A stretch of 49,691 nucleotides of DNA from Klebsormidium nitens (Eukaryota > Plantae > Klebsormidiophyceae). The translations under genes were made by a program, and so were the position numbers. The notes under the pieces are model-generated. The model saw only the letters and a list, made by a program, of their open reading frames with translations, did not search any database and was not told the DNA's origin. How positions within the stretch are numbered: the first letter of the stretch is position 1; every line of letters starts with the position of its first letter. Positions 9,301 to 33,300 of this stretch are shown here, one piece after another. Location of the stretch: assembly GCA_000708835.1 (NCBI GenBank), contig DF237153.1, forward strand, positions 96,741 to 146,431, read 5' to 3'.

Positions 9301-12300
9301 ATTCGTTAGTGTCAGGATCTGATAATCAGAAGGCACGACCGGGGGACGGGTGGGGTTGGTATGGGAGTTAAGAGTGGGTTTTGGTGCAAAGCGCGTCATG
9401 ATTCTCAATTAGCGCTCTTTTAGTCAAGCCACTGCACCAAGTACGTTCTTGTCAGTATCCATCATAGGTATGTTTCTCTGCGAGGAGGGGGGAGCTCTTC
9501 TAGTTAAGCCACGGCACCAGGTACGTTCTATTAATTACCCATCATATGTTTCTTTGCGAGGAGGGGGGAAGAAGCTACGAGTCGACCCAACTCAACTCAG
9601 ACGCGTTCCAAAGCCTAGGCATTTTACCACCCGACAGCGCTCCAATACACCCAGCACCCAACGCCGTTCGCTAAGTGCAGGCTGTGGTTGGCCTGTTGCA
9701 AAGTTGGCAGGCGGTTCCGCGGGTAGTAACATCATTTGACTTTATCAAGAGCAAGCGCTTTGCAAAAGTCTCAGGAGACGTCAGCAGGATTGCAAGCATC
9801 ACCCAAACAGCATGAGAAAGAAGCGCGGGCTCTCCTTAAACTCCCTTCCGCAAAGCTTTGCCTTTCAACCCTTTGGATGCTTTGCTCGCGCCTCCTGCGT
9901 TTGCATACTCTGTCGTACGCAACGACAGCTAAAGCGGTTTGTGCTGGAACGATCACGTCAGACACTCCACGAAAGATTTTGGACCAGCCTTTCAGACACC
10001 ATCTCTTCCGGACACTTTGTGCTCACCCGTACGTCCGCACGCCTAGCCTCCGCCGCGCGCACATCGGATCCACGCGGAGAGCGTTGTTCATCACCTCAAA
10101 CAGCTGCTCAATCCGCTGATCCAGCCGCAGATCCTCGCCGCCTTTCACCACAAACCGATACTCTTTCTCATCGCTCCCCCTAATGATCAGCACCTTCGGG
10201 CGCCGGATCGACGAGAAACACGTCAGGGTTTGGTCAAACCCGACGATGGTTACGTGAGACCCGGGGTCCGGCCGGCAAAATCCGCCGTACTGCCCGGGCA
10301 CTTCAATGCCCCCCGCGTCGCTCTCGGTGAAGTCCGAGATGGTGCCACGTGGCAGCTTCCCGCGCGCGCCACGTGGCGGCGCGGCGCCGCGCGACTGGTC
10401 GTAGTCCGCGAGCCACTTGGAGAAGCGGGAGAGCTGCATCTTGCCGTGAGCCAGGTCCTCTCTGTCGAGCACGTGTGACACGCTGGATATCGCGTTTTTG
10501 TACTCTGTCGCGGACATGCGCGCGAGCTTTACGCCATCTTTCCCGAGGGCGCTGACGATCTTGGACTCGAAGTTGCGCGCGTAGGCGATGAGGTCGTCGC
10601 CGGCCTGGCGCTCCGCGGCCGCGAGCGCGCGCGCGTCCAGGCAGTCCCTGCGCGGATAGCATGAGAAAGAGTCGTTCAGTGAGGGAATTGTTACGGACGA
10701 CGGTGACTCTTTGAGATTTTGGGCTTCTGCTGAATGGCTCAATGTCGCATGACGATCCTTTCGTGTGAAAAGAAGAGATTGGTGGTCGACAAACAGGAAC
10801 CCCGGACGTCGGTATCCTTTTTTTGCGGTGGACTCCTGACAGGTCTTTCATTCTAGTATCTCTACAACGACCGTCTGACGCAACGGAGAGCCTTACACTG
10901 CGGGTTTTTGCCCATAGGTGCTGGATCAGGTTGGTGAAACAAATGATCTTTTTGGAACAGCATTGCTGGTGTTGGTAATAAACGTCAGGATATTGTCATC
11001 CTGCTCTTGATTAATCACTGTACCGCAAAAAGAAGAAACGAAAGGACGTCTATTGCTCGTGAACTCCATCAGCTGCTGTACCCTAAAATAAGCTACCATA
11101 TCACAAACGCCTTTCGTATCGAGAACACAGGAAAGACTCACAACGCCAGATGCCCTTCTCTGAATAGTGATTGGACCAATCTGCTCCTTTGAGTTCAAGT
11201 TCTCCCTTCCCTCAAGCATTTACGCCAATGATTGTGTCCTGATCTCAACAAGGGATGCTTAGCAAGGTAGAAGGCGATCCATATTGTCTCGTCTTTTTGC
11301 GGTGACTTGCAGGCAGCAACAAAGTGACCAGACCCCGATGGTTTGGGCGGTCGCGCTTCGGCGATCAGATTTTGCGCTCACCTGTACATCTCTCGGAACG
11401 CTTCCTGCGCCCCCTGGTTGTCCCGCCGCTGGAGGCGCATGCTGATCTCGCTGAGCCAGTCCTTAAGCTTCAGGTTGGGATGCGACAAATCGCTCAGCGC
11501 GGTCACGAACTGGTCCAGGAGCGGGTTGTGCAGCAACCGGGCGACGCGGGAAGTGCGTTCTCTTGCCACGTCGCCGAAAGCGGGCTGGCTCACTGCGGAA
11601 GGTTGAGTGAGCCGATGAATGACTGTGCTTGGAGTGACTGCTCAATCTCAGGAGTCACTGAGTTGGGTCTGGCGTGTGTGCCAACGGAAGTCGGTACGGG
11701 GGTGAAAGCTTCTCAGTGGTCGTGCTGCTTTAGAAGCTGCAGTCCAGACAGGAGCATAAAGCAGAGGGATGTTGGCGATGACTGGACTTGAGTCCGAAAC
11801 AAGCGCCTCAGAATGCCTTCGTGACTTCGGGCAAACGTCACTTCCAGGCAGAACGCACGGCAGCCGTCCGCTCAGAAAACGCGACAGGAAACTCCAGTCT
11901 CCACGCTCTTACTTGTCTTCGACCAGAATGTTCTTGACTTTTGACGAGAGAAAGCCACGAAGAGACAGGGACGAAAGGATCTATTTACAAGAGGACAAAC
12001 CATCAGCCCACTAAAACCGGAAACAAGCGTCTCGTCGCCAGCGTCTCACCGTTGAACGGATAGTACAGGGCCTGCGGGAACTCCTCCGCGACCCGCTCCA
12101 GGACGCGCGCGAGCACACGCCCCTCGGGCTGCTCCATGACCGACAGGATCTGCGACACCCATGAGATGAACACCCAGCTCGGGACCGATTCGACGCCACT
12201 TTCGAACTCCGCGAGCGTCTCTTTGTTTTGGCCCACGAGCGCCAAAACCCTGGGGACTAACTGGTGCGGTTTGAGCGATGCGTCAAGGCTGAGGGCGCGC

Positions 12301-15300
12301 AGCACGTGTTTGACCACCAAGGGGGGGTACTGTGAGACCGGGGGAAGGCCTGAATCCGTGCCCCCCGCCAAGGCGGATGTCATTTCGGGGGGGAGGGCGG
12401 TTGAGTTGGTTTGAGTCTGGTCCGCCTCCCCCGTCGCGAGCTGGAGGACGTCGTTGCAGAAGCGGGCGAACTTGAGGGACGCCTTGCTCTGCCGTCGCGC
12501 TTCCCGTTCCGCTGTTCCGTTGTCTCCGCTCGACAACGCAGCGAAACTCCCTTTTTTGCCGTCCAGAATCGAGACCGCGTCCGAGTAGCCCCGGAATGCG
12601 GCGCCCAGGTTTCCGACGACCGCTTGCCCCGACGAAAACCCCCNNNNNNNNNNNNNNNNNNNNTCCGCCTCTCCGCTCTCAAAGACGAGATCTTGGCCGC
12701 CAGTCTCAGGAAGTCCCAGTCAAAGCCCTGGTTTGACACGTTCCCTAGGCTTTGCCGTCCTGCGTCGTACTCTTTGAGGTAGTCCTGTGCCACGTCATAC
12801 TCGCCCCGCTTGCGCAGCCCCGCCGCCGCCTGCTTGAAGTAGGAGCTGCTCGAGGCGGCCAGGTCGGCGGCCAGCTTCGTCCCGTCGTAGTTCGCCACGT
12901 GGCCAGCCTGGAGGAGATGACTTATCGGATGAATGCGCTAGGCTTCACCTCAGCTCTGACAGTTTAGTGTTATTGGTTAAAGGTGTCATGTTCAGGACTT
13001 TCACCTCCGAACAGATGTCGTTCGAGCTTCGCCTCAGCTCGTATGGGTCAAAAGTTGTGAAGACAGTCTGACGACAGCTCCTGTCACCGTTGCCATTTTC
13101 GTCACTCATGCAACGATGATCCTCCTTCGATGATTCTCGCGAATTACAGTTCCTGACATTTAAGCTCACAGGACCACACAACATCACCACTGGCCCCTTG
13201 TACCTTTGTCAGGGAGCCCCCTTGTTCCTTGATTCAGAAGGAAAAACTTCAGACTGAACACGTCGAAGTGGCTTCCAAGAACTGTGCAGCACGCTTTCGC
13301 CCCACTTGCCCACAGCAAGTCCGCACAGAGGGTATACGTGGCCTTTTCTTGGTCGAGATTCCGGAGAACGTGGTCGGAGAGAGAAGTCAGAAAGGAGTCA
13401 GAATGTGGGCAGGAATGAAGAGCACAAAAAGCAGGTACAAACAAGTGAGCTGAAATATAGGCAGAAAAGCAGGTAGGTCCAAGAGCCTTGTCCGCGCCGC
13501 CCACCTGCGCCAGCATGCCCATGTGGCCCTTCGCCCTCTCCAAACACAGGGCCCGGTGGCGCACGACGTCATCCCAAACTCCCACCCGGTCGTGCTCCCA
13601 GGACGGCCACCGGTGCTGCCACGTGTCCAAAAGATCGCCCACTTGCCGCAGGGGGTCCTTATTGTCGGGGTTTAGCAGCCCCCCGGGGAGGGAGCGGCCG
13701 CTTGAGGAGGGAAGGGGGCCGGTGCGGGCAGTGACTGCGGCCAGCTGATCGCCGGAGGAGCTGCTGACGAACGAGAGGAATTCGTCGAACTCGACCATGA
13801 TCTGAAGCTGCTCCGCCTGCATTCGATGAGATTACGGTTTCAGTGATCGTATCATTGCCACTAGCGGCTTCAAGCTCGATTTGGAAGACATGGGTTCAAG
13901 ATTCTATTCATTCCATGCTAAACAGAAGCTCTCAACGTTGTCCTTCCAGGAAGGTCCAACTTGTGGGCTCCTTCTCGCCCTACAACCGTTGATCCTGCAA
14001 AAAAGTCTTGAGTGACCTCCGTCGGAAGGCCTTAAGCATCTGTAAATAAGACGGGTCTAGTACAGCTTCTAGGACGGTATAGGTGGCCGACTTCGGGGAG
14101 GATTGTCCTTCTGAGAGCCCACATGTGGAAACCGGTAACTGGCGATCTGCTAGGGGGAGGTTTGGTTTCGCGGAGAGCCCACATGCGAAAGAAAAACGGC
14201 GACGTCACCTGAGCATGCCGGGCCCCCACGGCGAGCGGGTGCAGCGCGCCCCACTTCCGGCGGAAGTTGCGGTAGCAGTTGGAGAGGTGGAAGCGCGCGC
14301 GATCGTACTGCCCCCCGCGAGCGCCATCGCCGTCAGCTGGAGGCCGAAGTCGTCGGTTAGCCGCGCGCGCTTCGCAGGGTCGTCCATCGAGGCCTCGAGG
14401 AACTCCTGGAGCGCCACGTGTTGGGTGGGGACCTGAGGGAATGAAACCAGGGTTTATGGGCTTTAAGGGTCGGGTTTGGAGAAGTCATAAGTAGGGAGTT
14501 TCAAGGTTGAGGGCTTTTGAGGATCAGGTTTGAGAATAACAAGAATTGACAAGACACAGGTTACTTGCGTCCGCTCTCGCAGATAGTGTGGGCACAAGTC
14601 GCACAGATTGTTCGGCTGCAGTCTCATCTTGAAAGCGGCTTGCACGGAAAGCCGCAGATACGGGTCCCACAGGCTGTTGTCGGCCCACAGGCTTCAGCGT
14701 GTCTGCATATGCCCTCAATAATGCGAACAACGTAAGCAAATTACCCAGCGGGCGAGCGGGAATTTTGAGAACGTGGCAGTCTCACCTTGGAAGCGCTGAG
14801 CACAAACAGCCGCAGGTACGGGTCCCGGTTTTCATCCGCCCACAGCTTCTGCGTGTCCGCGTCCATTGGGCGCCCGTGTGCGTCGTACTCGGTCACCTAC
14901 AAGCAGACACAGATTCTGGCTATGCTCAAGATCGCAGCGCTACCGTCCGATGGATTGGAAGAATTTCAGTCCAACACCTTTAGCCTGGAGGTCGCCTATT
15001 CTGACAGCACAGGTTCTGCCACCTCGATGTATACGAACTTGACAATCCTGGCACCAAATGAAACGTCTGAAGCGTTCAATTCTGGACGTCAAACTCTGAA
15101 AGGGAGCGGTGCGATTGTTGGTCGTTTTCAACGCAGCCAATCGGTGCATTCCAGGATGTCAGAAATGTTGACGAGACACAGCTGCAATATCCTTAAGCCG
15201 TCAAACATACTACTGAGAGCTTCATCTTGATCTCGGAGAAAGCCAACTGCATCAAGAATGACCATAGAGGTTGACCTGGAGACGCATCTCCCAGCAAGAT

Positions 15301-18300
15301 AAGGACAGCAGATAAGAAACTGTCGAATCGCCAGAGCCTCCGAAGTTCTGCGGTCCGCTTGCCTGCTCCAGCGACTCGTCCACCAGCTCCTGCCACCGGG
15401 TCAGGCTCTCCAGGCACTCCAGCCGCTGGTTGTAGCACACGTCCGCCTCTAGTTTGCTGTACTCTGGGGAATCTGCAGGCACCGGAGGAGACGTATGTCA
15501 TTATCTTGCGGCAATGGTGAATTTCGACAGGTATTCAAGGAGCTTAGATATTAGTTTGTCCGGGATTTACGTGCTTCCTGGGAGAATTTGTGAAAGACAG
15601 GTACCTCCAAAGTTAAGAGCAATAATGTTCTGATTCTTTGGCAACTGGTTTGGGTCCCTCCGGTGGTGGCTGCAGACATTCGGCCCTGACCCGTCCCGAA
15701 TCTGACCGGGAGACGGAACCCTGGGTTCTTTGGAGCACTTTCGAGATGGAGATTGTAACCTGCCATAAATGAAAGTTCAGCGAACAGGTTATGTAATCGC
15801 TGCGCAAAGAAAGATTCGACGATGGCAAACATACAACAATCGGCCTAGTGCCTGCAGAACGCGGTTGTTTCTCTTATCAACCAAGGACACGTGTCGTCAC
15901 CTTGGTCCATCTCGTCCATCTCGTTGAGCGCCTTGTCGTACCCTTGCCAGGCCCGCGTGTAATCGCCCGCAATCTGCGCTTGCAAGGCCTCCCGCGTCGA
16001 CTCCAACCGCGCGACTTTCTCCTGCAGTGCGGTCGCAGGTTTGGAGTTGCGACCCAAGTGTCGATGACTGTCACTTGGTTGTGTGGGAGTGCAGCTCTAA
16101 AGGTACAGACACTCTGTTGTATCAAGTCCATATGGAATACCATACCAGACAAGGACAATCTGGGATGTTTAAAGTCATGTTGTTCAGAAGATACCGTTGC
16201 TCTGCAGTCATTTCGTATCATCAATCCACGAACACTCTGCCAGCATTGTCTTATCGATGTAATGTTTGTAAGAGCTGGCCCTATGTGAATTTTCCAACCC
16301 GACAGGGGAACGTTTGATCCAGATACTTCTTGAGTCACCTTAGAGCAAGGATAAAGTCCTACAAAAACCAATGAACAAGCATCTGACAGCGAGCAGTGGC
16401 GTGTTCAGCCACTGTCTTTTCGTACTTCAAAGCAAGTGGGATGGGGAAAGTGGTCGGAACCCACAAGGCGCACGTGCTCTAACCGACCAACGTGCACTAG
16501 AATGTCAAGGAACGATTTCATAATCGACAATAAGTAAAAGATCTGAGATTGACCTGCAGGACACCCAACACGATGTCGTCCTCTCCAATCTCCCGATACA
16601 GCCTCGCCAGCTGCAGCCACGTCTCCTGCTCCTCTTCCCCGCCCTCTCCCTGGCCGCCACGTGGCACCGCCTGGCCGCCCCTCCCTTTCTGCCGCTTACT
16701 CCTACTCCCCCTCTCTTCCCCCTCGTCTTGCGACTGGTCAAGCAGCTGATTCTCGAGAACCAAGATTCCAGAATGGTAGTTCATCGACCGGAGGCTAGCG
16801 TCCCCTAGGCTGCGCGCTTCCACGCGCATCTTGGGATCTTCGAGACAGATTGCGTGCAGGCTCGCCACGAAGCTGGTACGCGCGCGCGTGCGTGCGAGCG
16901 CGGCCGCGACCCCCTCGCGCACCGGCCGCCTCACGTCGTTTTCCCCGTCTCTCAACGCGGTGCTCGGCAGAGCGAACGCCCCCCGGAAGAGTCCGGCGGA
17001 CAGCGTCCGCGCGACGAGCGGATCGCGCTCCGCGAGCGCCATCAACGGCTTCAGGACGTCCTCCGTCTTGATCTGGATGTCCGGCAGCTCGCCCGTCCGG
17101 TACGACCGCATCATCGTCACCTTGTGCACGCGCGCGCCCGCCTGCGCGCTCGCGCGCGCCTCACGTCGGCGGCGCGCCCCGAGCACCCCCTGCAAAACCT
17201 GGCTGGTCCGCGGTTTGAGAATCCGTCTCTGCACGTTCGTCTGGGTGTCCCACAGCGCCCCGCCCCTGCGAGCCCCTCCCAAACCCTGGGTTACGCCCTG
17301 GGTCAACCCGACCTGGCTGAAACCCCCCCTAAACCCTCCCGACTGGGTTGCCATCAGCGAGCTGCTGACGAAGTCTCCCTGCGACAAAGACGGGGCAAAC
17401 GTACCCCCCTGGGAGAGGGACTGCGACGGGCCCTGGGTCGCGCGAATCATTCCGGGGGGAAGCGGCTGCTGCTGAGTCCGTCCCCCCGTTTGCGTTTGGC
17501 TGGGCGCTGGGGCCTGGCTGCCGAGTTCTTGGAGCGTGGCAGTTTGGGATTGCGAGAAGAGGGGGGTCATCGGGAGGCTGCGGCCGGTGAAGGCGGTGTC
17601 GATATTGTACTCGGAGAAGTGGCACTCGGCTAAGGGCTGGTCAAAGAGGGGTCGACTATAGTCGGTGGATGCCTCGCACAGCTGCGCACAACCAAAAAAA
17701 AGAGAGCGTGATCATCTGCCTGCTGAGTATCTGCCTGGTCTCGGGTTGACATCTGGATCGGCCCACGTCGGTTAGGGCCAGAAGCGTCAATACGCGCTTA
17801 AGAGATCTGCTTTTGGCTTGCCAAGCATTGGGGAAATTCCTAACGGTAAAACCAACGAACGCAGAAGTATTCTTCTCATTATCGCTCGCCTGTTGTGCAA
17901 CAAACTTGCAGCGTCGTCAAAAGGCTTAGGTGCGGTGGAGCGCATCAGCCAGGCCGAGAAAGAGAAGCATAAGACAATTACTTTGCCGTACAAATTACAA
18001 GTTCCTACAAGCAAGCCATGGTCTAAGCCTAGCGTCTCGCTTCTATCCTGCCCTACGAAGTTCTCTTCCGCCATCACGCAAATCCGCTCAAGTTTGTGGC
18101 GACCACCCGGCGTACGTTGAGCAGCATCTTGTCGCTGTACTGCGCCCACTTGTCCTCCAGCTCCGGCTCGTAAAGCCGCCCGAGCAGCTCCACGAGCCGC
18201 GCCGGCATCTCTTGCGACAGCTGTAGTCCCCAGAAGAATTGCGCCTCTTCCCGCAATTCATCGGCCGGGTCGCACAGCCCGGTCAGCAGGTGCCGCTGCA

Positions 18301-21300
18301 CCTGGGGGTGGTCCGGCATGCCCTTTCCGTCGGGGGCGGGGCGGAAAAGGAACTCCAGGATGCGGTAGAACTCGCGCCTGCGAAGATGGAGTTGGAGAAG
18401 GTGACTCTTCGGTGACTGACATAAAGGACCGCCGCCGTCGTTAAACTGGCCAGAAAACGTCCCTTACTTCCGAGGAAAGTCAGAAGCTGTACTCCAAGGT
18501 CCTATTCTAATCGCGCCTGCACGGATGAGGATACGTCCAGCTGAACCACAAAGATGCCCTTTTCCTTTCTCAGAAAAGCGGACCGTTTTCTTTCTCGGTG
18601 GAGCGGGCCGAGAAAGGTGGTGAGGGTTGCAATCTACACCAACAGAGGTACATTGCATGTAAACACAAAGTGTGGCCGGCGCCGCGTTGTGGCAAGTCTA
18701 GCAGATCCTTATTCGCTCAAGCCCCTTGGATGCAAGCCGTTGGGCCCCTCCAACAAGCGATTACACGTCCTCGGTCGCCGGACAATGCTTACACCGTCTC
18801 CCACGCACCCTTTCACTGTCTCTTTCAACCACATCACATCAGACATCTCAAAGGGACGAACCTCAAGACTGACCCCGTCACACGCGGGAAGCTCCTAAAT
18901 AACGAAACTGACGTCACGTCCCCGGTCTGACCTGCACTCGGGGTTGTCGTGGCGGCTGAACACCGGGCAGAGTATGGGCAGCAGCACGGTCTCGACCCTC
19001 TCCCGGCTGATGCTCGGGAGGATAGCCTCGAGAATCTGCAGCGTCTTGAGCTGCGCCTGTTCATCGCGGTGCTCCAGCAGGCTGCGCAGCGCAGGGGTCA
19101 GGTATTCGAACAGCTCCAGGAGGTTTGCGGCGTAACCCAACAGCATGTTGAGAACCTGGACACAAAGGGAAGGCCACGTTGTTAAGATACCTCTTTCAAG
19201 ATCGAAGGCTAGTTCCTCTATGCACTTGCGGGTCGTTCCCTTTCCCCCGGAGGAGGGTCGCAGCTCGGGGGGTGAGGACTCGAACAACTCGGGGAGGTTC
19301 GCGGCGCATCCCAGCAGCATGTTGAGCACCTGCGGTTTGGATTTAGGGTCTGACGCAGATACAATGACTTATGTATTAAAGTAGGCCTCCAGTGAAGTCA
19401 GATGCTAATCTGTTTGTCCGTTTGCGCGTTGTCCTCTCTTTTCGCCTCGACGGAGGGGTTGAGATGCTGCACAGCGCCAGCACAGGTACTCAGAAGCTTG
19501 AAGAGATTGGCGGCATGACCCAGCGACATGTTGAGGACTTAGGACAGAAACAATGGTACAGTTCACAATGGGCTGTTGTAATCTGGATGCTATGCCCTTT
19601 GCCTACTAGCGTGCTGTATTTTCTAGTCCGAGAGAGGGTGCAGCTGAGAAATGGTGATCCCGGGATTTGATTCTTGGTTCTCGCAACGGCCGAGGCCCAT
19701 TTTTAACAAGTCGCGAGCCCTCGTTCGTCTGCTCCATGCAGACTTGGAAATTACCCCCGGTTTGTATCCTGCCTGCTTTGGTTCGTGAGGGTTTGCCATG
19801 CAGGAGAGGTTCAAAACTCAAACGCGAGGCCTCTAAGCCCACACGTGATTGAAAGCTTGATTCAGATTTACAATCTTGGCTCCTACTACGGGAAGAGAGG
19901 ACGTTGGTCTGCAGACATTTTGCGACAAGGACATCGCATATCCACCGGTTTTTACAAACGACGCGCGTCCCGCAATGGGCTTGCTCCACTCTCGCCCACA
20001 TTCCGTCGGTCACACGACAGCTAAAAATCGAAGTGTTTTGACAAGGTCCAAAGTTTTTCGGACCAACAAGGTCAAGTGCGACCATACCAGGATCTTGAAG
20101 TCCCCGGGCAGCGACATGACGTCCCCGGCCACTTTGCTCGCCCACTTCTCCACGAACTTGGGGAAGCGTCCGCAGATCTTGGCGGCGATGTTGTAGAACG
20201 TGGCTTTCGTGGCGCTGTTCTCTCGGTAGAGGCTCAGCAGGCGTTGGTGGAGGGGCCGCTCCAGCAGGGACTGGTCGCGGTCCGGCGTCTTGTCGCGCTC
20301 AAAAAGGGCGGCGCCGATCACCTCCGCCGCCGCTTCGTACACCTGAGAGAGATGCGAGAGAATCTGGGGAAGAACGGAAGCGAAGGCCACGGAGCGGAAA
20401 AGGAAGTTTCATCACGCGTCCGGTGGAGATAAGTACACTCAGCCAAAGTCTCTGTGTCTAAAGCGTGCAGGACTCAGTAGATTGAAAAGGACCGGTTAGA
20501 GAGGGCTCCACATCTTCGACAACCTTTCAGAGACATGCAGACAAACGAACGTTTCGCCGAGTGGTTGAGAAAAGAAGGAAATGTCCAAGCGGGATGAGCT
20601 TGGAAGAGCTCCAACTGCCTGCACCTGAAGGCCCTCAAGCATTCAAGGGTCAGAATGAGCCACATGTCCTCACCTCCTTGGCCTTGAAGCCCAGGCACTC
20701 CAGCAGCCGACCATACACCTCCTTCTCCGGGATCGCCGCGTCTTCAATCGAGTCATATATCTTCATCCCCACCGCGATCAGCACCCCAAACAGCTGCAAC
20801 CCCGCCGTCTTCTTGACCTTCGCATCGCTCCCGTCAGCCGCTAAGTACCGCAGGATGACGCGCTTGTCCACGCTGACGTCACTCTTCCATTCGGCTAGGA
20901 AGAGCCGGATGACGTCAATGTTGGCGGACAGGACGGCCCGCGTCGGGTGCGCGGACACGCGCATGAGGTGTCCGATGAGGTCCGTGGCCTTGGAAGGGTT
21001 CGGGGGTTTGGCGAGGTCCCATTGCAGGAGGACGATGCACACGTCACGGAGGAAGTAGTGGAAGGAGGCGCCGCCGGATCGGGAGGGGTCGGCCGTGAAG
21101 ATCTGCAGAATGACGGCGCTGGTATCTTTGGTTCCATTTGTATTGATGCATTTAATGGCAGTCACCGGACTCATTTACATAAGCGAATGATGCACCCTGC
21201 CAACACTTGAGCAGGGTTGCTGACAGCCCTACAAGCGGAACCATTTGGTTACATACACTTGACTTTACTGACCATAAAAAAAGAAGTAACTGCTTGTCCG

Positions 21301-27300: not shown

Positions 27301-30300
27301 TGTAGAGCCGGCGCAGCATGGACGTCACGTTCACGAAGTTGTCCGCCTTCAGGAGCAGAAGAATGAAGGTGTGAGTTTCAAAAGGAGATTAGACAATCAT
27401 GAGAAGTTCCACGAGTGATTGACAGCTGGCGTAGCATGGACGCCACGTTCACGAGCTTGTCGGCCTTTGAAAAGAAAAAGATATTAGGGAAAGGTGTGAG
27501 AATCCGAAGGACGGTTGAAAAGGTATTGCTGCGGGACTGGTTGTAGAGCCGGCGCAGCATGGACGTGACGTTTACACAATTGCCGGCCTGAAAAAGCAGA
27601 TGAATTCAACAAGAGACGTGAGAATCCAAAGGAAGGTTGAAACGTTCAAGATTCGTCACGGGACTGGTTGTCCGCCGGCGCAGCATAGACGTCACAAAGT
27701 TGTCAGCATGTATCATGATTTTGTAAGTTGTTTAAGGAGAGGACAAAAGACAAGGAGCAATCTGAGTTGAGACCTGTATGAAACACTTGCCTATTGTGAC
27801 CTGGCAGATGTCTCAGAAAAGCAAGCTTGGAACAGAAGGGTAAACCCGAAACAAAAAACGGACCCGGACCTCTCGGACAGCTGCCGAGAGCAGTGGCTCG
27901 AACCAGTAGCTCGCTGCACATCAAGCTCTTGAGACGCCGCTACCTCAAAGGTTTGTCATGACTACTGAAAAGCAGGCGCCTTGTGCAGCCAACAAGGCTC
28001 AGGTGCAATTGACAATCCAAGAAGTACAACGTCCGGCACTGAGCGACGGACAACTTACCTCAGGAGGCGCGTGGCGAATAGACCATTCCATGAATTCCTG
28101 AAAGCACCCGGCAGAAAACTCCCTGCAGGAAAGGATGCTACTTCAGCTTTCCTCGCCCACAAAGAGCCTTTTGATATCCTTCAGCAGACGCATGCGCCCA
28201 GTTCAAGGGGCCTCTGCAGCTGAGCAGGACCTCGGTCTATCTCTTGGCACGGTCCGATGGGTTTTCCCGTACAAACGGTTGGAGAAGCTGACGTGCACTA
28301 TGCTTACAAAGGCCTCGTGTTCGCCAAACATGACAGATTAGCCCACCTGAGAGCGCCGTTGTCCTCGTCCACAAGGCCCTCCAGGATGGCGTCGAGCAGC
28401 GCCATCGTCTCGGGGTGCTCGCGCGTTTTGCTGCTGGTGAACCAGCGGATAATCTGCTTGACGAACTCGGAGAAGAGCCGCTGCGTTACCTGCGAACCCC
28501 GACACACAGATCACAGGCTTTTAGGGTCAGCTTGTCAAGATAAGCCTTTGAGCTTGGTTATTATAAGAACCAAGCTTAACGAACGAGAGTGATCCCGGCA
28601 GCTAAAAATGGAATGCAATCCCGAGACACCTTGACAAGTGCGCTTAACGGCAAATGGTCTGGCGTGCTTCTTCCTCTGCTCCTTCGCAAGTCCACCGTGC
28701 CCTTGTCTCTCGAAGGCGCGTCAAGGCATCCATATCAACGGCGATTTTGGGCAGCAACTGTAATAACATAGTATGCATCATTTTGAGAAACAACGCAGGC
28801 CTCTGCAGCATCCCAACGTACCGGCTCGACATCGGTCGCCAGCTTGAGCAGAGCAGGGAACAGCTTCCGATAAATCTTTTGGAACTGGTACTCCTGCAAA
28901 GGAAGAGCACAGTGGTTGATAACCAAGTGCCGCACTCGCTCGAGCTGACGCTTCCTTGTGATGGAGTGGAATACATACCCCTCGCACACGGATATTTGGG
29001 ATTGGGTTCAGTGCACGGAGGTCTCTAGACGTCTGGATTTTGGGAGTAGAATCTTGCAACGATCTTGATCATTCAGCTGGAAAGGTCGGCACTGGACACC
29101 CTGCATGCTCTTTGGTTAGACGTGTGCAACAACAATCACATCCTTGTCAGCTTCGCCGGTTGCCTAGTCGCTTCACCGGTTGCCTAATCCTTACTCTCCA
29201 AAATACATATAGCAAGGCATGGTTACAGAGCGGGTAAGACAACATAAGCACAAGCCTTTCTGGACGGGTTGATAGCTTGGGTTCGTAAGGGGCACGGTTA
29301 CGGAGCGGGCCCAGTTTCTGGTTTAGATCTTGATTGTTAGATTCGTTTTTCGCTGCTCCACTCGGCTCAACATGTTTCTGTCAGCGTACCTCTCTAAGCT
29401 CCTCGCCCCTTCGCTGGAGCGGCGCCTTCGCGCTGGTACCAATCATGTACAGTGAGACCGCGTGGAGCAGTTCGGAGGCCGCCACCTTGGTGCGCCGGTC
29501 GGTGGACGACTGCGCGAGCTCCACGACGCGCGGAAGGAGCGGATCTGCGGATAATCTCGTCATTTTATTGAGAAATGTTTCTTTGTATTATCTTTACATC
29601 TTCCTCTAGAATCTCGAGCTTGGTTTTCTTCCACACTCTTTCAGTACTGGCGAATTAGGCGGAGACCACTTGCGGCACCAAAACTGAGCCAACCAAATAA
29701 GCAAGAAGTTCATATGGAATACGTGGATGGGGGATGAAAAGCAGAAGGGTAGAGATCAATTGTTGAGTTAGGAAGAGAAAAGATTGGCTGTTTCACCTAC
29801 TTGTCTCGTGGGGGCATGGATGGGACGAAGGAGAAGCTTTCGTAGACAAAAGCAGACAAGGCATACGCGTTCGTCCAAGCTGAGGATTTGACTGATTGAA
29901 ACTCTACGTACAAACATCGCGTCACTTCTATCAGACGGCCGTTTTCATTCAGATGCTGAAGTGCAGGCGAGCTAGAAACACTGGGACTAGCACTAGCTTG
30001 AGATTTTGTGCCCCGCCCACGGGTGTCGCACCTAGGTAGATGTCAGGCTTTTCGTCCCGGAATGGCAGCGCAAACTTGATCCGTTTGATGACGTCCCAGG
30101 CCAATGCGCTCTGGCCGTCGCCCTTGGTCAGGTTGACGTCAGGCACGAGCAGGTGGCTGTGGCCGCCGATGCGCCCCAAAAAGCGCTGCACCCGCAGCTG
30201 GAGCCGCTCGAAGGGGCTCGCCTGCGGAGAATTCAAACATGAATTCGGAGCAATTTCTTGATTTCAATGGTCTAGAATCTGAAACAAAGTCAGTCCATCC

Positions 30301-33300
30301 ATCTGAAACAGGCAGTCAACAGCTTCGTCGGGGAATAGAACAACCGAAATAGAAACTTGATACATTAGGCTGAGATGAGCGAGGACGAATATGGGAGTTT
30401 CCAGATCGTGAGCGTATCTTCTTGCCAAGGCTTCGGAGGCTCGGTTGATTCCGGATACCGCCTCGAAAGAAGGCGATTGGAGCTTCCTGAGTTTGGGAAC
30501 GAGAACGGAGGCAGATTCTGCCATCGTCTCCGATATTGCAATCCCACCAAGATTGTCTTTTTCAAGGCCGCCGGCATGGACAAACCGCGATCAGGATGTC
30601 GAGGCAAAGCCAGGCAATCGTACTGCGGTGCTTCAAGAGATTCTTGTGGCTGCACCTGCATATCCTTCGCCCGCGCCTCTCGCTGCCGCCTCGCCTGCGT
30701 CCTCGTCATGTCCGCCGTGTTCCTCTTCTCGGCGACCTCGTCCCCTGCGGCCCCAGACATCTGGTCGGCCCCCGAGGTGTCGACCTCGGCCAGGTAGTCA
30801 TTCAAAAGGGGGACAATCTCCGGCAGATGGGGCTCCAGCTCTCGGAAGTGGTTCTTCAACCAGCCCTCTAGAGTGTCTAGAGCCAGGTCCGCCAAGGGCT
30901 GGTAAGTGCACAGTTGGTCAAGGAAGCAACAGAAAGAAGGCGGATCGACGGTGCTTGTCCTGCTTTCCATTCGAAGCGATGGATTCAGATAGCCGCATCA
31001 ACATCAAACGGCAGAGTGCCGACGAAACGGTCCAGAGGACAGCAAGCTGCGGAATGTATAATATACTCGAGCAACGTCCGAGTCCAGGAAACTCCAACGG
31101 GCTCCCTCCCTTTCTTGCATGCTGGAAGTTTAACGTGTCACAAACATGACAAATCAGGAGAAACGCAGAAATGGCAGGAAAGATTGAAGCCAGGCAGAGA
31201 CCGACACACATCGGAAGGCATCTGAAGGCAACCCAGTGTCAGACACGTCCTGTCCGATGTGACGAGCACTGCAAACTGAACAAAAGAAAATTGAAGGAAA
31301 CAAAGAAAACAGCTGCAACTGGAAAGGATATCTCAAGCCCATGGTGAGCGCGCTCTGCATCGGCCCCACCAGCTGCCGGATCTCCAGCAGGACCGTCGGC
31401 GCCGAGAGGCACATCTGCAGGCACGCCGCGAGGTGCTCCAGCTTGTACCGCCGGCTGGCGACCAGCACCTCGCGCAGAAACTTGCGGAAGAGCTCCGTGC
31501 ACTGCTCGCGGTCGCCGGGAGGGACGCCCGGGAAGGGGCTCGCCTGGAGGGGATAATAGCGATAAACTTGAATACTAACAAGGAACTTAAGGTACAGGAG
31601 GACCGGTGGGGTTATTTTGGTGGTTAGGGTGGGTTCGGGTGCGGAGCATGTCATTCTGTCCTAAGGGTTTTAATGTTGGTTAAATCGAGGAACTCAGTAC
31701 TTTCAGTACTTAAGATCCTTGTTATCAATAGAGTTTATGGTTATAGGGGATGAGAGAGACCAGGTTTTGGCGACCAGTATCCTGTGCAGAAACCCGCGGA
31801 AGAGCTCCGTGCACTGCTCGTGGTCGCCGGGAGGGACGCCCGGAAACGATTTCGCCTGCAGGAAGGAGTGAGTGGGTTTTGGCAACCAGGACTTCGCGCA
31901 GAAACTTGCGGAACAGCTCCGTGCACTGCTCGCGGTCGCCGGGAGGGACGCCCAGGAAGGGGCTCGCCTGCAGCGAAGGGGCAAGCAAAAACTTGCCTTG
32001 GTCTTGTAAGTTGTGCACAATACCCAGTCATAATATCGCAGGGCAATGAGTGGAGGCTAAGTATCCTGACAGAGAAACGGCTGAACAGGGCTTTGTCTAA
32101 ACAGGGGGACAAGACGAAGGTGGCGCCCGACAATAGAAGGAGGGTTGAACGAGCAGGGGCTTCTTCGGGGATTGCCATGAGAAGACAACGAACCTTCCAA
32201 AGCAGTAGGATGCGGCTTTAGGTCCGGATAAAACAAAATCAACAGCTTGAGAAGGAAGATCTACAGGGCGGTCCTTGAGCAGGCAGACAACCGCAAGGGA
32301 CTTCGTGCTAAAGGAAAAGAGAACACTGGACGTGTCGAGAAGATTGATTTTGAACGGCAGCAGATGAACGCTTGAAGTCAAAAAAGCGAAATGTACAGCC
32401 TTAGCGGCTGACCTCGGACATGGGCACGTCCCCGTCAGCATCCGGCTCTGCTGACGTCGATTCCGCCGCGAAGTAGCCGAGCGCGTCCCCGACCCTTATG
32501 GCGACTGCCAGCAGCTTATAGAAGCCGCTGATCAACGGGTATTGGTCGGAGAGGGCGATGACGTCACGGCCGAAGGTGTACAGCCACTTCGGGAAGAAGC
32601 TGACGCAGCACCTGGGAAAAAAAGGCTCGCTTCGTTGGACAAAAGAAGCGGGTCAGAAACGCTTTCTTACACGAAGTGGCGGGAGGCCCAGAAACGTACA
32701 TGGCGGATAGCTATTCGCATCTGACAGCAGAGTTTGTTCCACATGGCAGCTCACCCTCTTGCTGCAAACCTCACATGGTAGTCGTCTTTAAAAACAAAAG
32801 AGTTGACTTGTCTGTGGCTCCATAAGAGTTTGCACATAACGAAGCAAAGAGGTACAAGCGGTCAACCATCCCACCTGAAACCGTCATCGTCCGACCCGTG
32901 ATCAGAATTGGAACGTAGCTTACATTGTCCAGAGGTAAGGACGATCGCTTCAAAACCTTGCAGTTGCGTTCCTTGCAAAGGAGAATGCAAGCCTCACTTC
33001 TGCAGGAACTCCTGGGCGAACTCCACAAGAGTAAGGAACATGCGCATGTCGTTCGGGTTCAGCGGGATGATGCTCTCCAGCGCCAACTCGGGTTCGACGT
33101 CCTCGGAAGTCTTGCCTTCATCCTCTGTGAAACAAAAGCGCTATATTCAGCAAATTTGAGCGAGCTTTATTTAGTAGTATTGTCATTATCGTCTAGAAGA
33201 GCAGCTACTCACCTATCAAGATCGGCTGCTTGTAAAAAGGGGTGACGGTAAATCTAGCCGAACTTTGAAAGGATAAGAGTACAATGAAAAGGTCGACGGA

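Follow-up and report, generated by a model that had tools for sequence, protein, structure and literature searches.

The DNA-PKcs (PRKDC) gene of the streptophyte alga Klebsormidium nitens is interrupted by a 426-nt intron with AT...AC termini, read from the sequence at positions 31331..30906 on the minus strand of the window, i.e., the whole 49,691-nt stretch of DNA analyzed. With high confidence, it is interpreted as a genuine U12-type (minor-spliceosome) intron of the AT-AC subtype, inserted in phase 2 into the Ser codon of the GL-S-YxPLA motif within the N-terminal part of DNA-PKcs. In the alga as well as in four land plants (two liverworts, a moss and a lycophyte), both the class of the intron and its AT-AC ends have been retained. 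It is a newly documented example of a known intron class and does not involve a new mechanism.

In order to describe the host gene, the DNA-PKcs protein P0103 (4070 aa) of the moss Ceratodon, which possesses the full DNA-PKcs Pfam domain set, was compared with the window by tblastn. Residues 1–4070 of this protein matched the minus strand in 35 colinear blocks that extend from 39466 to 6202, which places the whole gene inside the window. Similarity is full-length and colinear and includes the N-terminal and circular-cradle regions as well as the kinase and FATC ends. Upstream of the exon that precedes the AT-AC intron, at least eight homology blocks are found, with gaps between them. In a solved-structure protein alignment, this exon matched residues 699–760 of human DNA-PKcs (E 5e-6), with its MGL end opposite human KLGL, and the sequence-only reading had accordingly named the host gene correctly. 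Among solved structures, no DNA-PKcs match was obtained with the initial 38 residues of the downstream exon, a query that is too short for this purpose. Furthermore, a 134-aa exon (20674–21075, minus strand) retrieved 96 hits from a representative library, many of them full-length DNA-PKcs, and all named hits were DNA-PKcs proteins. A 20-base run of N at 12644–12663 represents an assembly gap within the gene.

The exon upstream of the intron ends in ...ACC ATG GGC TTG AG, with 31332 as its last base, and the intron starts at 31331 (minus strand) with ATATCCTTTCC. The 5' splice site ATATCCTTT at 31331..31323 conforms to the U12-type consensus /RTATCCTT (the slash marking the exon end) and is the sole minus-strand RTATCCTT in the window. 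The branch-point sequence TTCCTTGAC at 30917..30925 conforms to the U12 branch box TCCTTRAY, which is expected ~10–20 nt before the 3' splice site; its branch A at 30918 precedes the final intron base, 30906, by 12 nt. At its 3' end, the intron reads ...GTGCAC, with the terminal AC at 30906..30907, and the next exon continues from 30905 with T TAC CAG CCC TTG GCG. The intron phase is 2, the Ser codon of the motif being split as AG/T, and the insertion point is found ~18% along the coding sequence. Re-reading of the minus strand showed the coordinates and motifs reported earlier to be correct throughout, including the agreement of the 5' site and the branch box with the U12 consensus.

From established knowledge on U12-type splicing, the rigid 5' site ATATCCTTT would be recognized by the U11/U12 di-snRNP, with U11 acting first and U6atac later. 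U12 would pair with the branch sequence TTCCTTGAC (TTCCTT.AC) leaving the A at 30918 bulged out, and the 12-nt distance between branch point and AC would set the 3' site, a polypyrimidine tract being unnecessary. Intron removal is thus expected to depend on the minor snRNPs U11, U12, U4atac and U6atac. An Rfam search of the 49,691-nt window detected neither snRNAs nor any other RNA family.

An AT-AC intron in the same codon and phase is present in all four land-plant loci analyzed (L001 to L004), namely those of the liverwort Riccia sorocarpa, the lycophyte Selaginella moellendorffii, the moss Ceratodon purpureus and the liverwort Marchantia polymorpha. These orthologous introns also keep the signals of their class, reading ATATCCT[T/C]...AC. 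The 5' box of the alga, ATATCCTT, recurs unchanged in Selaginella, Ceratodon and Marchantia, whose introns measure 56, 459 and 292 nt, end in AC and contain the branch boxes TCCTTAAC, TCCTTGAC and TCTTTAAC with the presumed branch A 11, 16 and 11 nt from the 3' end, respectively. The Riccia intron (269 nt, likewise ending in AC) features the 5' box ATATCCTC and a weak branch box, TCTTTAAT, with the presumed A ~15 nt from the 3' end. In the orthologues, the presumed branch A was assigned by consensus and precedes the AC end by 11–16 nt; in the two liverworts, the branch boxes (TCTTTAAC, TCTTTAAT) are one or two bases off the consensus. Intron length varies from 56 to 459 nt across these orthologues, and the split codon encodes Arg (AG/G) in the land plants, whereas it encodes Ser (AG/T) in the alga. 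Since the alga shares the intron with these four species, the intron predates land plants. Moreover, neighboring intron positions are also common to the alga and the moss Ceratodon, and the whole exon structure is therefore old.

Rare U2-type AT-AC introns exist, and it is well established that terminal dinucleotides alone do not fix the class of an intron, which speaks in favor of removal by the major (U2-type) spliceosome. However, U2-type AT-AC introns possess neither the ATATCCTT 5' box nor a TCCTTRAC branch box near the 3' end, and both are present here and in the four orthologues. Removal by the major spliceosome is consequently considered very improbable, and assignment to the U12-type class is preferred.

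Transcript evidence for the intron originates from contigs of four public runs (X1, X6, X7 and X11, representing four studies and two organism labels), which were placed on positions 28600–31700. In total, 20 public runs contain part of the stretch, many of them comprising 0.44 of the sampled words, approximately the exonic share. One contig in each of the four runs carries the joint 30905^31332, which skips 426 nt; its plus-strand ends GT..AT correspond to AT..AC on the gene strand, and its positional ambiguity is 0, so that the AT and AC termini are those used in the mature RNA. Three neighboring introns are skipped in the same contigs, with plus-strand ends CT..AC corresponding to GT-AG on the gene strand. 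Because four exact intron skips occur in one contig, the runs, whose RNA status would otherwise be a guess, derive from spliced transcripts. The junction between 31332 and 30905 predicted from the DNA was hence recovered in four of four runs. The sequence-only reading had found no GT-AG solution restoring the motif, and no GT-AG joint for this intron, including one at the cag at 30899, is listed for the contigs of the four runs, which are assembled contigs and not raw reads, so that rare alternative junctions may escape them.

Exon boundaries were deduced from the same contigs. The upstream exon (31543..31332, 212 nt, minus strand) encodes ...TMGL followed by AG of the split codon; contigs cover 31332–31545, the last two letters being common with the preceding exon, which places the 3' splice-site AG at 31545–31544. 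The downstream exon (30905..30656, 250 nt, minus strand) comprises the T of the split Ser codon followed by YQPLADLAL..., with contigs covering 30655–30905 and the next joint being cut one base further.

The intron upstream of the first of these exons harbors two tandem partial copies of the exon's first part (31456–31549). These copies, located at 31768–31861 and 31880–31973 on the minus strand, are 94 nt each in length and 85% and 94% identical to the original. Both contain the 3' splice-site AG and could serve as decoy acceptors; spliced contigs skip both and use the real site at 31545–31544. In three runs, unrelated contigs match positions 31605–31648 of the same upstream intron with their ends and continue into other sequence; this segment resembles a small dispersed repeat transcribed from elsewhere.

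At the protein level, homologue searches were performed exon by exon, separately, and further named plant and animal homologues were obtained from a region search with the Riccia protein. In ~30 homologues, the match to the upstream exon stops at residue N and that to the downstream exon begins at N+2; the AT-AC splice therefore yields a gap-free product. The motif is conserved across the homologues as GL-[S/R/G]-Y.PLA, and the spliced product of the alga reads GL-S-YQPLA, AG and T being joined in frame to a Ser codon. Restoration of the GLSYxPLA motif by splicing, as proposed from the DNA, is thereby substantiated.

Assembled contigs in place of raw reads leave room for the argument that the junction is an artefact of reverse-transcriptase template switching, of contig mis-assembly or of a processed copy, with the true splice located elsewhere. 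This explanation is regarded as having a negligible probability. An identical junction occurs in four runs from four studies, the joint has an ambiguity of 0 and is devoid of the repeat that template switching would require, the product is in frame and gap-free versus its homologues, and the same intron is present in four other species.

The splice motifs on their own do not exceed chance. In simulations, a 5' box followed by a branch box and terminus within 3 kb was obtained in ~18% of windows, and RTATCCTT matched five times on both strands of the window versus 1.2 expected, with one match on the gene strand. The four plus-strand matches (10812, 15187, 28174 and 30660) are antisense to the gene and were rejected as splice sites of DNA-PKcs; the one at 30660 corresponds to the sense codons AAG GAT AT. 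(K-D-M) inside an exon. One chance pair of 5' box and branch box is located on the plus strand (10812/13226). Another TTCCTTGAC occurs at 16511, 45 nt into an ordinary GT-AG intron, and was dismissed as a chance match. The AT-AC intron itself is above chance because of its exact fit to the exon ends and the reading frame, the spliced RNA contigs and the conservation among orthologues. That its motifs are chance matches around an ordinary intron, as the simulated frequency and the plus-strand pair might suggest, can practically be dismissed, since they are located exactly at RNA-defined intron ends, the contigs show no GT-AG pair in their place, and five lineages retain them at the same codon.

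Among the introns covered by contigs, unspliced contigs were found only for the U12-type AT-AC intron, namely in two of the four runs and at low depth. In run X1, an unspliced contig spans 31066–31315 (depth 3.3 versus 46.8), and in run X6 an unspliced contig at 31278–31361 crosses the 5' site (depth 4.5 versus 11.1). As deduced from translation, intron retention leads to a stop after 59 intron-encoded codons, and an unspliced message therefore cannot make the kinase. The unspliced contigs hint that the AT-AC intron may be removed more slowly than its neighbors. The assumption of the sequence-only reading that minor splicing is rate-limiting thus receives a weak indication from these two runs and is otherwise an inference, contig depth being a poor measure of retention. 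A more far-reaching and rather unlikely reading is that the intron class was kept from streptophyte algae to lycophytes because a slow-splicing, detained intron would act as a throttle, coupling DNA-PKcs output, and hence end-joining capacity, to minor-spliceosome activity under stress. Such a throttle would have a parallel in mammals, whose Ku80 gene contains a minor intron. The intron offers a concrete handle to ask whether minor splicing limits repair-gene expression in plants.

Beyond plants, the region across GL-S/G-Y lies in a single uninterrupted exon in Antedon (L005, a crinoid), Chanos (L007, a fish) and Oratosquilla (L009, a mantis shrimp). These three animals have in common a phase-0 GT-AG intron, located at 11468–11875 in L005, ~7263–8246 in L007 and ~28360–28560 in L009. 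Like the AT-AC intron of plants, the animal intron falls in the short conserved stretch immediately ahead of GL-S-Y, but it differs in being placed 23 nt farther upstream, in phase 0 and of the ordinary GT-AG type, so that the two positions are close but distinct. In Thecamonas (L008) and in an intronless metagenomic gene (L006), no intron was found in this region. On this sampling, the AT-AC intron is common to streptophytes and was seen nowhere else; four of four land plants carry it at the same position, in contrast to three animals without it.

Furthermore, several plant genomes have automated DNA-PKcs models that are broken by the AT-AC intron. In the Riccia sorocarpa model KAL3698516.1, ~45 residues are missing at the intron, and in the Marchantia model (GCA_001641455.1) both flanking exons are partly skipped. 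The models of Riccia fluitans and Adiantum begin directly after the intron and that of Calypogeia a few residues later; in Adiantum, the gene is split at the intron into a 763-aa and a 3281-aa gene ~110 nt apart. DNA-PKcs of green plants, lost in angiosperms, has been described previously, with mention of split or partial gene models and their cause unnamed (PMC10419180). For the curation of plant DNA-PKcs, the AT-AC intron should be forced at this position, and the practical value of the finding lies in annotation.

Approximately 700 minor-class introns are present in human. For green algae, minor introns and minor snRNAs were reported in 2023, Klebsormidium and Chara included, the minor-intron counts being 110 for Klebsormidium nitens and 166 for Chara braunii (PMC10639083). 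An active minor spliceosome in the host, as proposed in the sequence-only reading, would therefore not be news, as it had already been published for both species (PMC10639083). Nothing is added to the minor-splicing mechanism by the present intron, minor introns of streptophyte algae being already published. A literature search did not return a published report of a U12 intron in PRKDC, including one at this position. For human, the comparison is based on the solved-structure protein alignment and a published minor-intron list: PRKDC is absent from the human and mouse minor-intron gene tables, and XRCC5 and PARP1 are present (PMC6717393 supplement). The relevance of the finding is therefore that of an ancient, conserved minor intron in a gene without minor-intron status in human or mouse, three animals having no intron at this place.

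Compared with U12-type AT-AC introns in general, the intron features the same ATATCCTT 5' box, the TCCTTRAC branch box near the 3' end and the AT-AC termini; nothing mechanistic differs, only the host gene does. An insertion point ~18% into the coding sequence agrees with the 5' positional bias described in numerous streptophyte species (PMC10639083). Mammalian counterparts are DNA-repair genes such as XRCC5 (Ku80) and PARP1, which contain minor introns; here, likewise, a double-strand-break repair factor is encoded by an mRNA that would need the minor spliceosome. In mammals, it is the Ku80 partner that bears the minor intron, whereas in streptophytes it is the kinase subunit.
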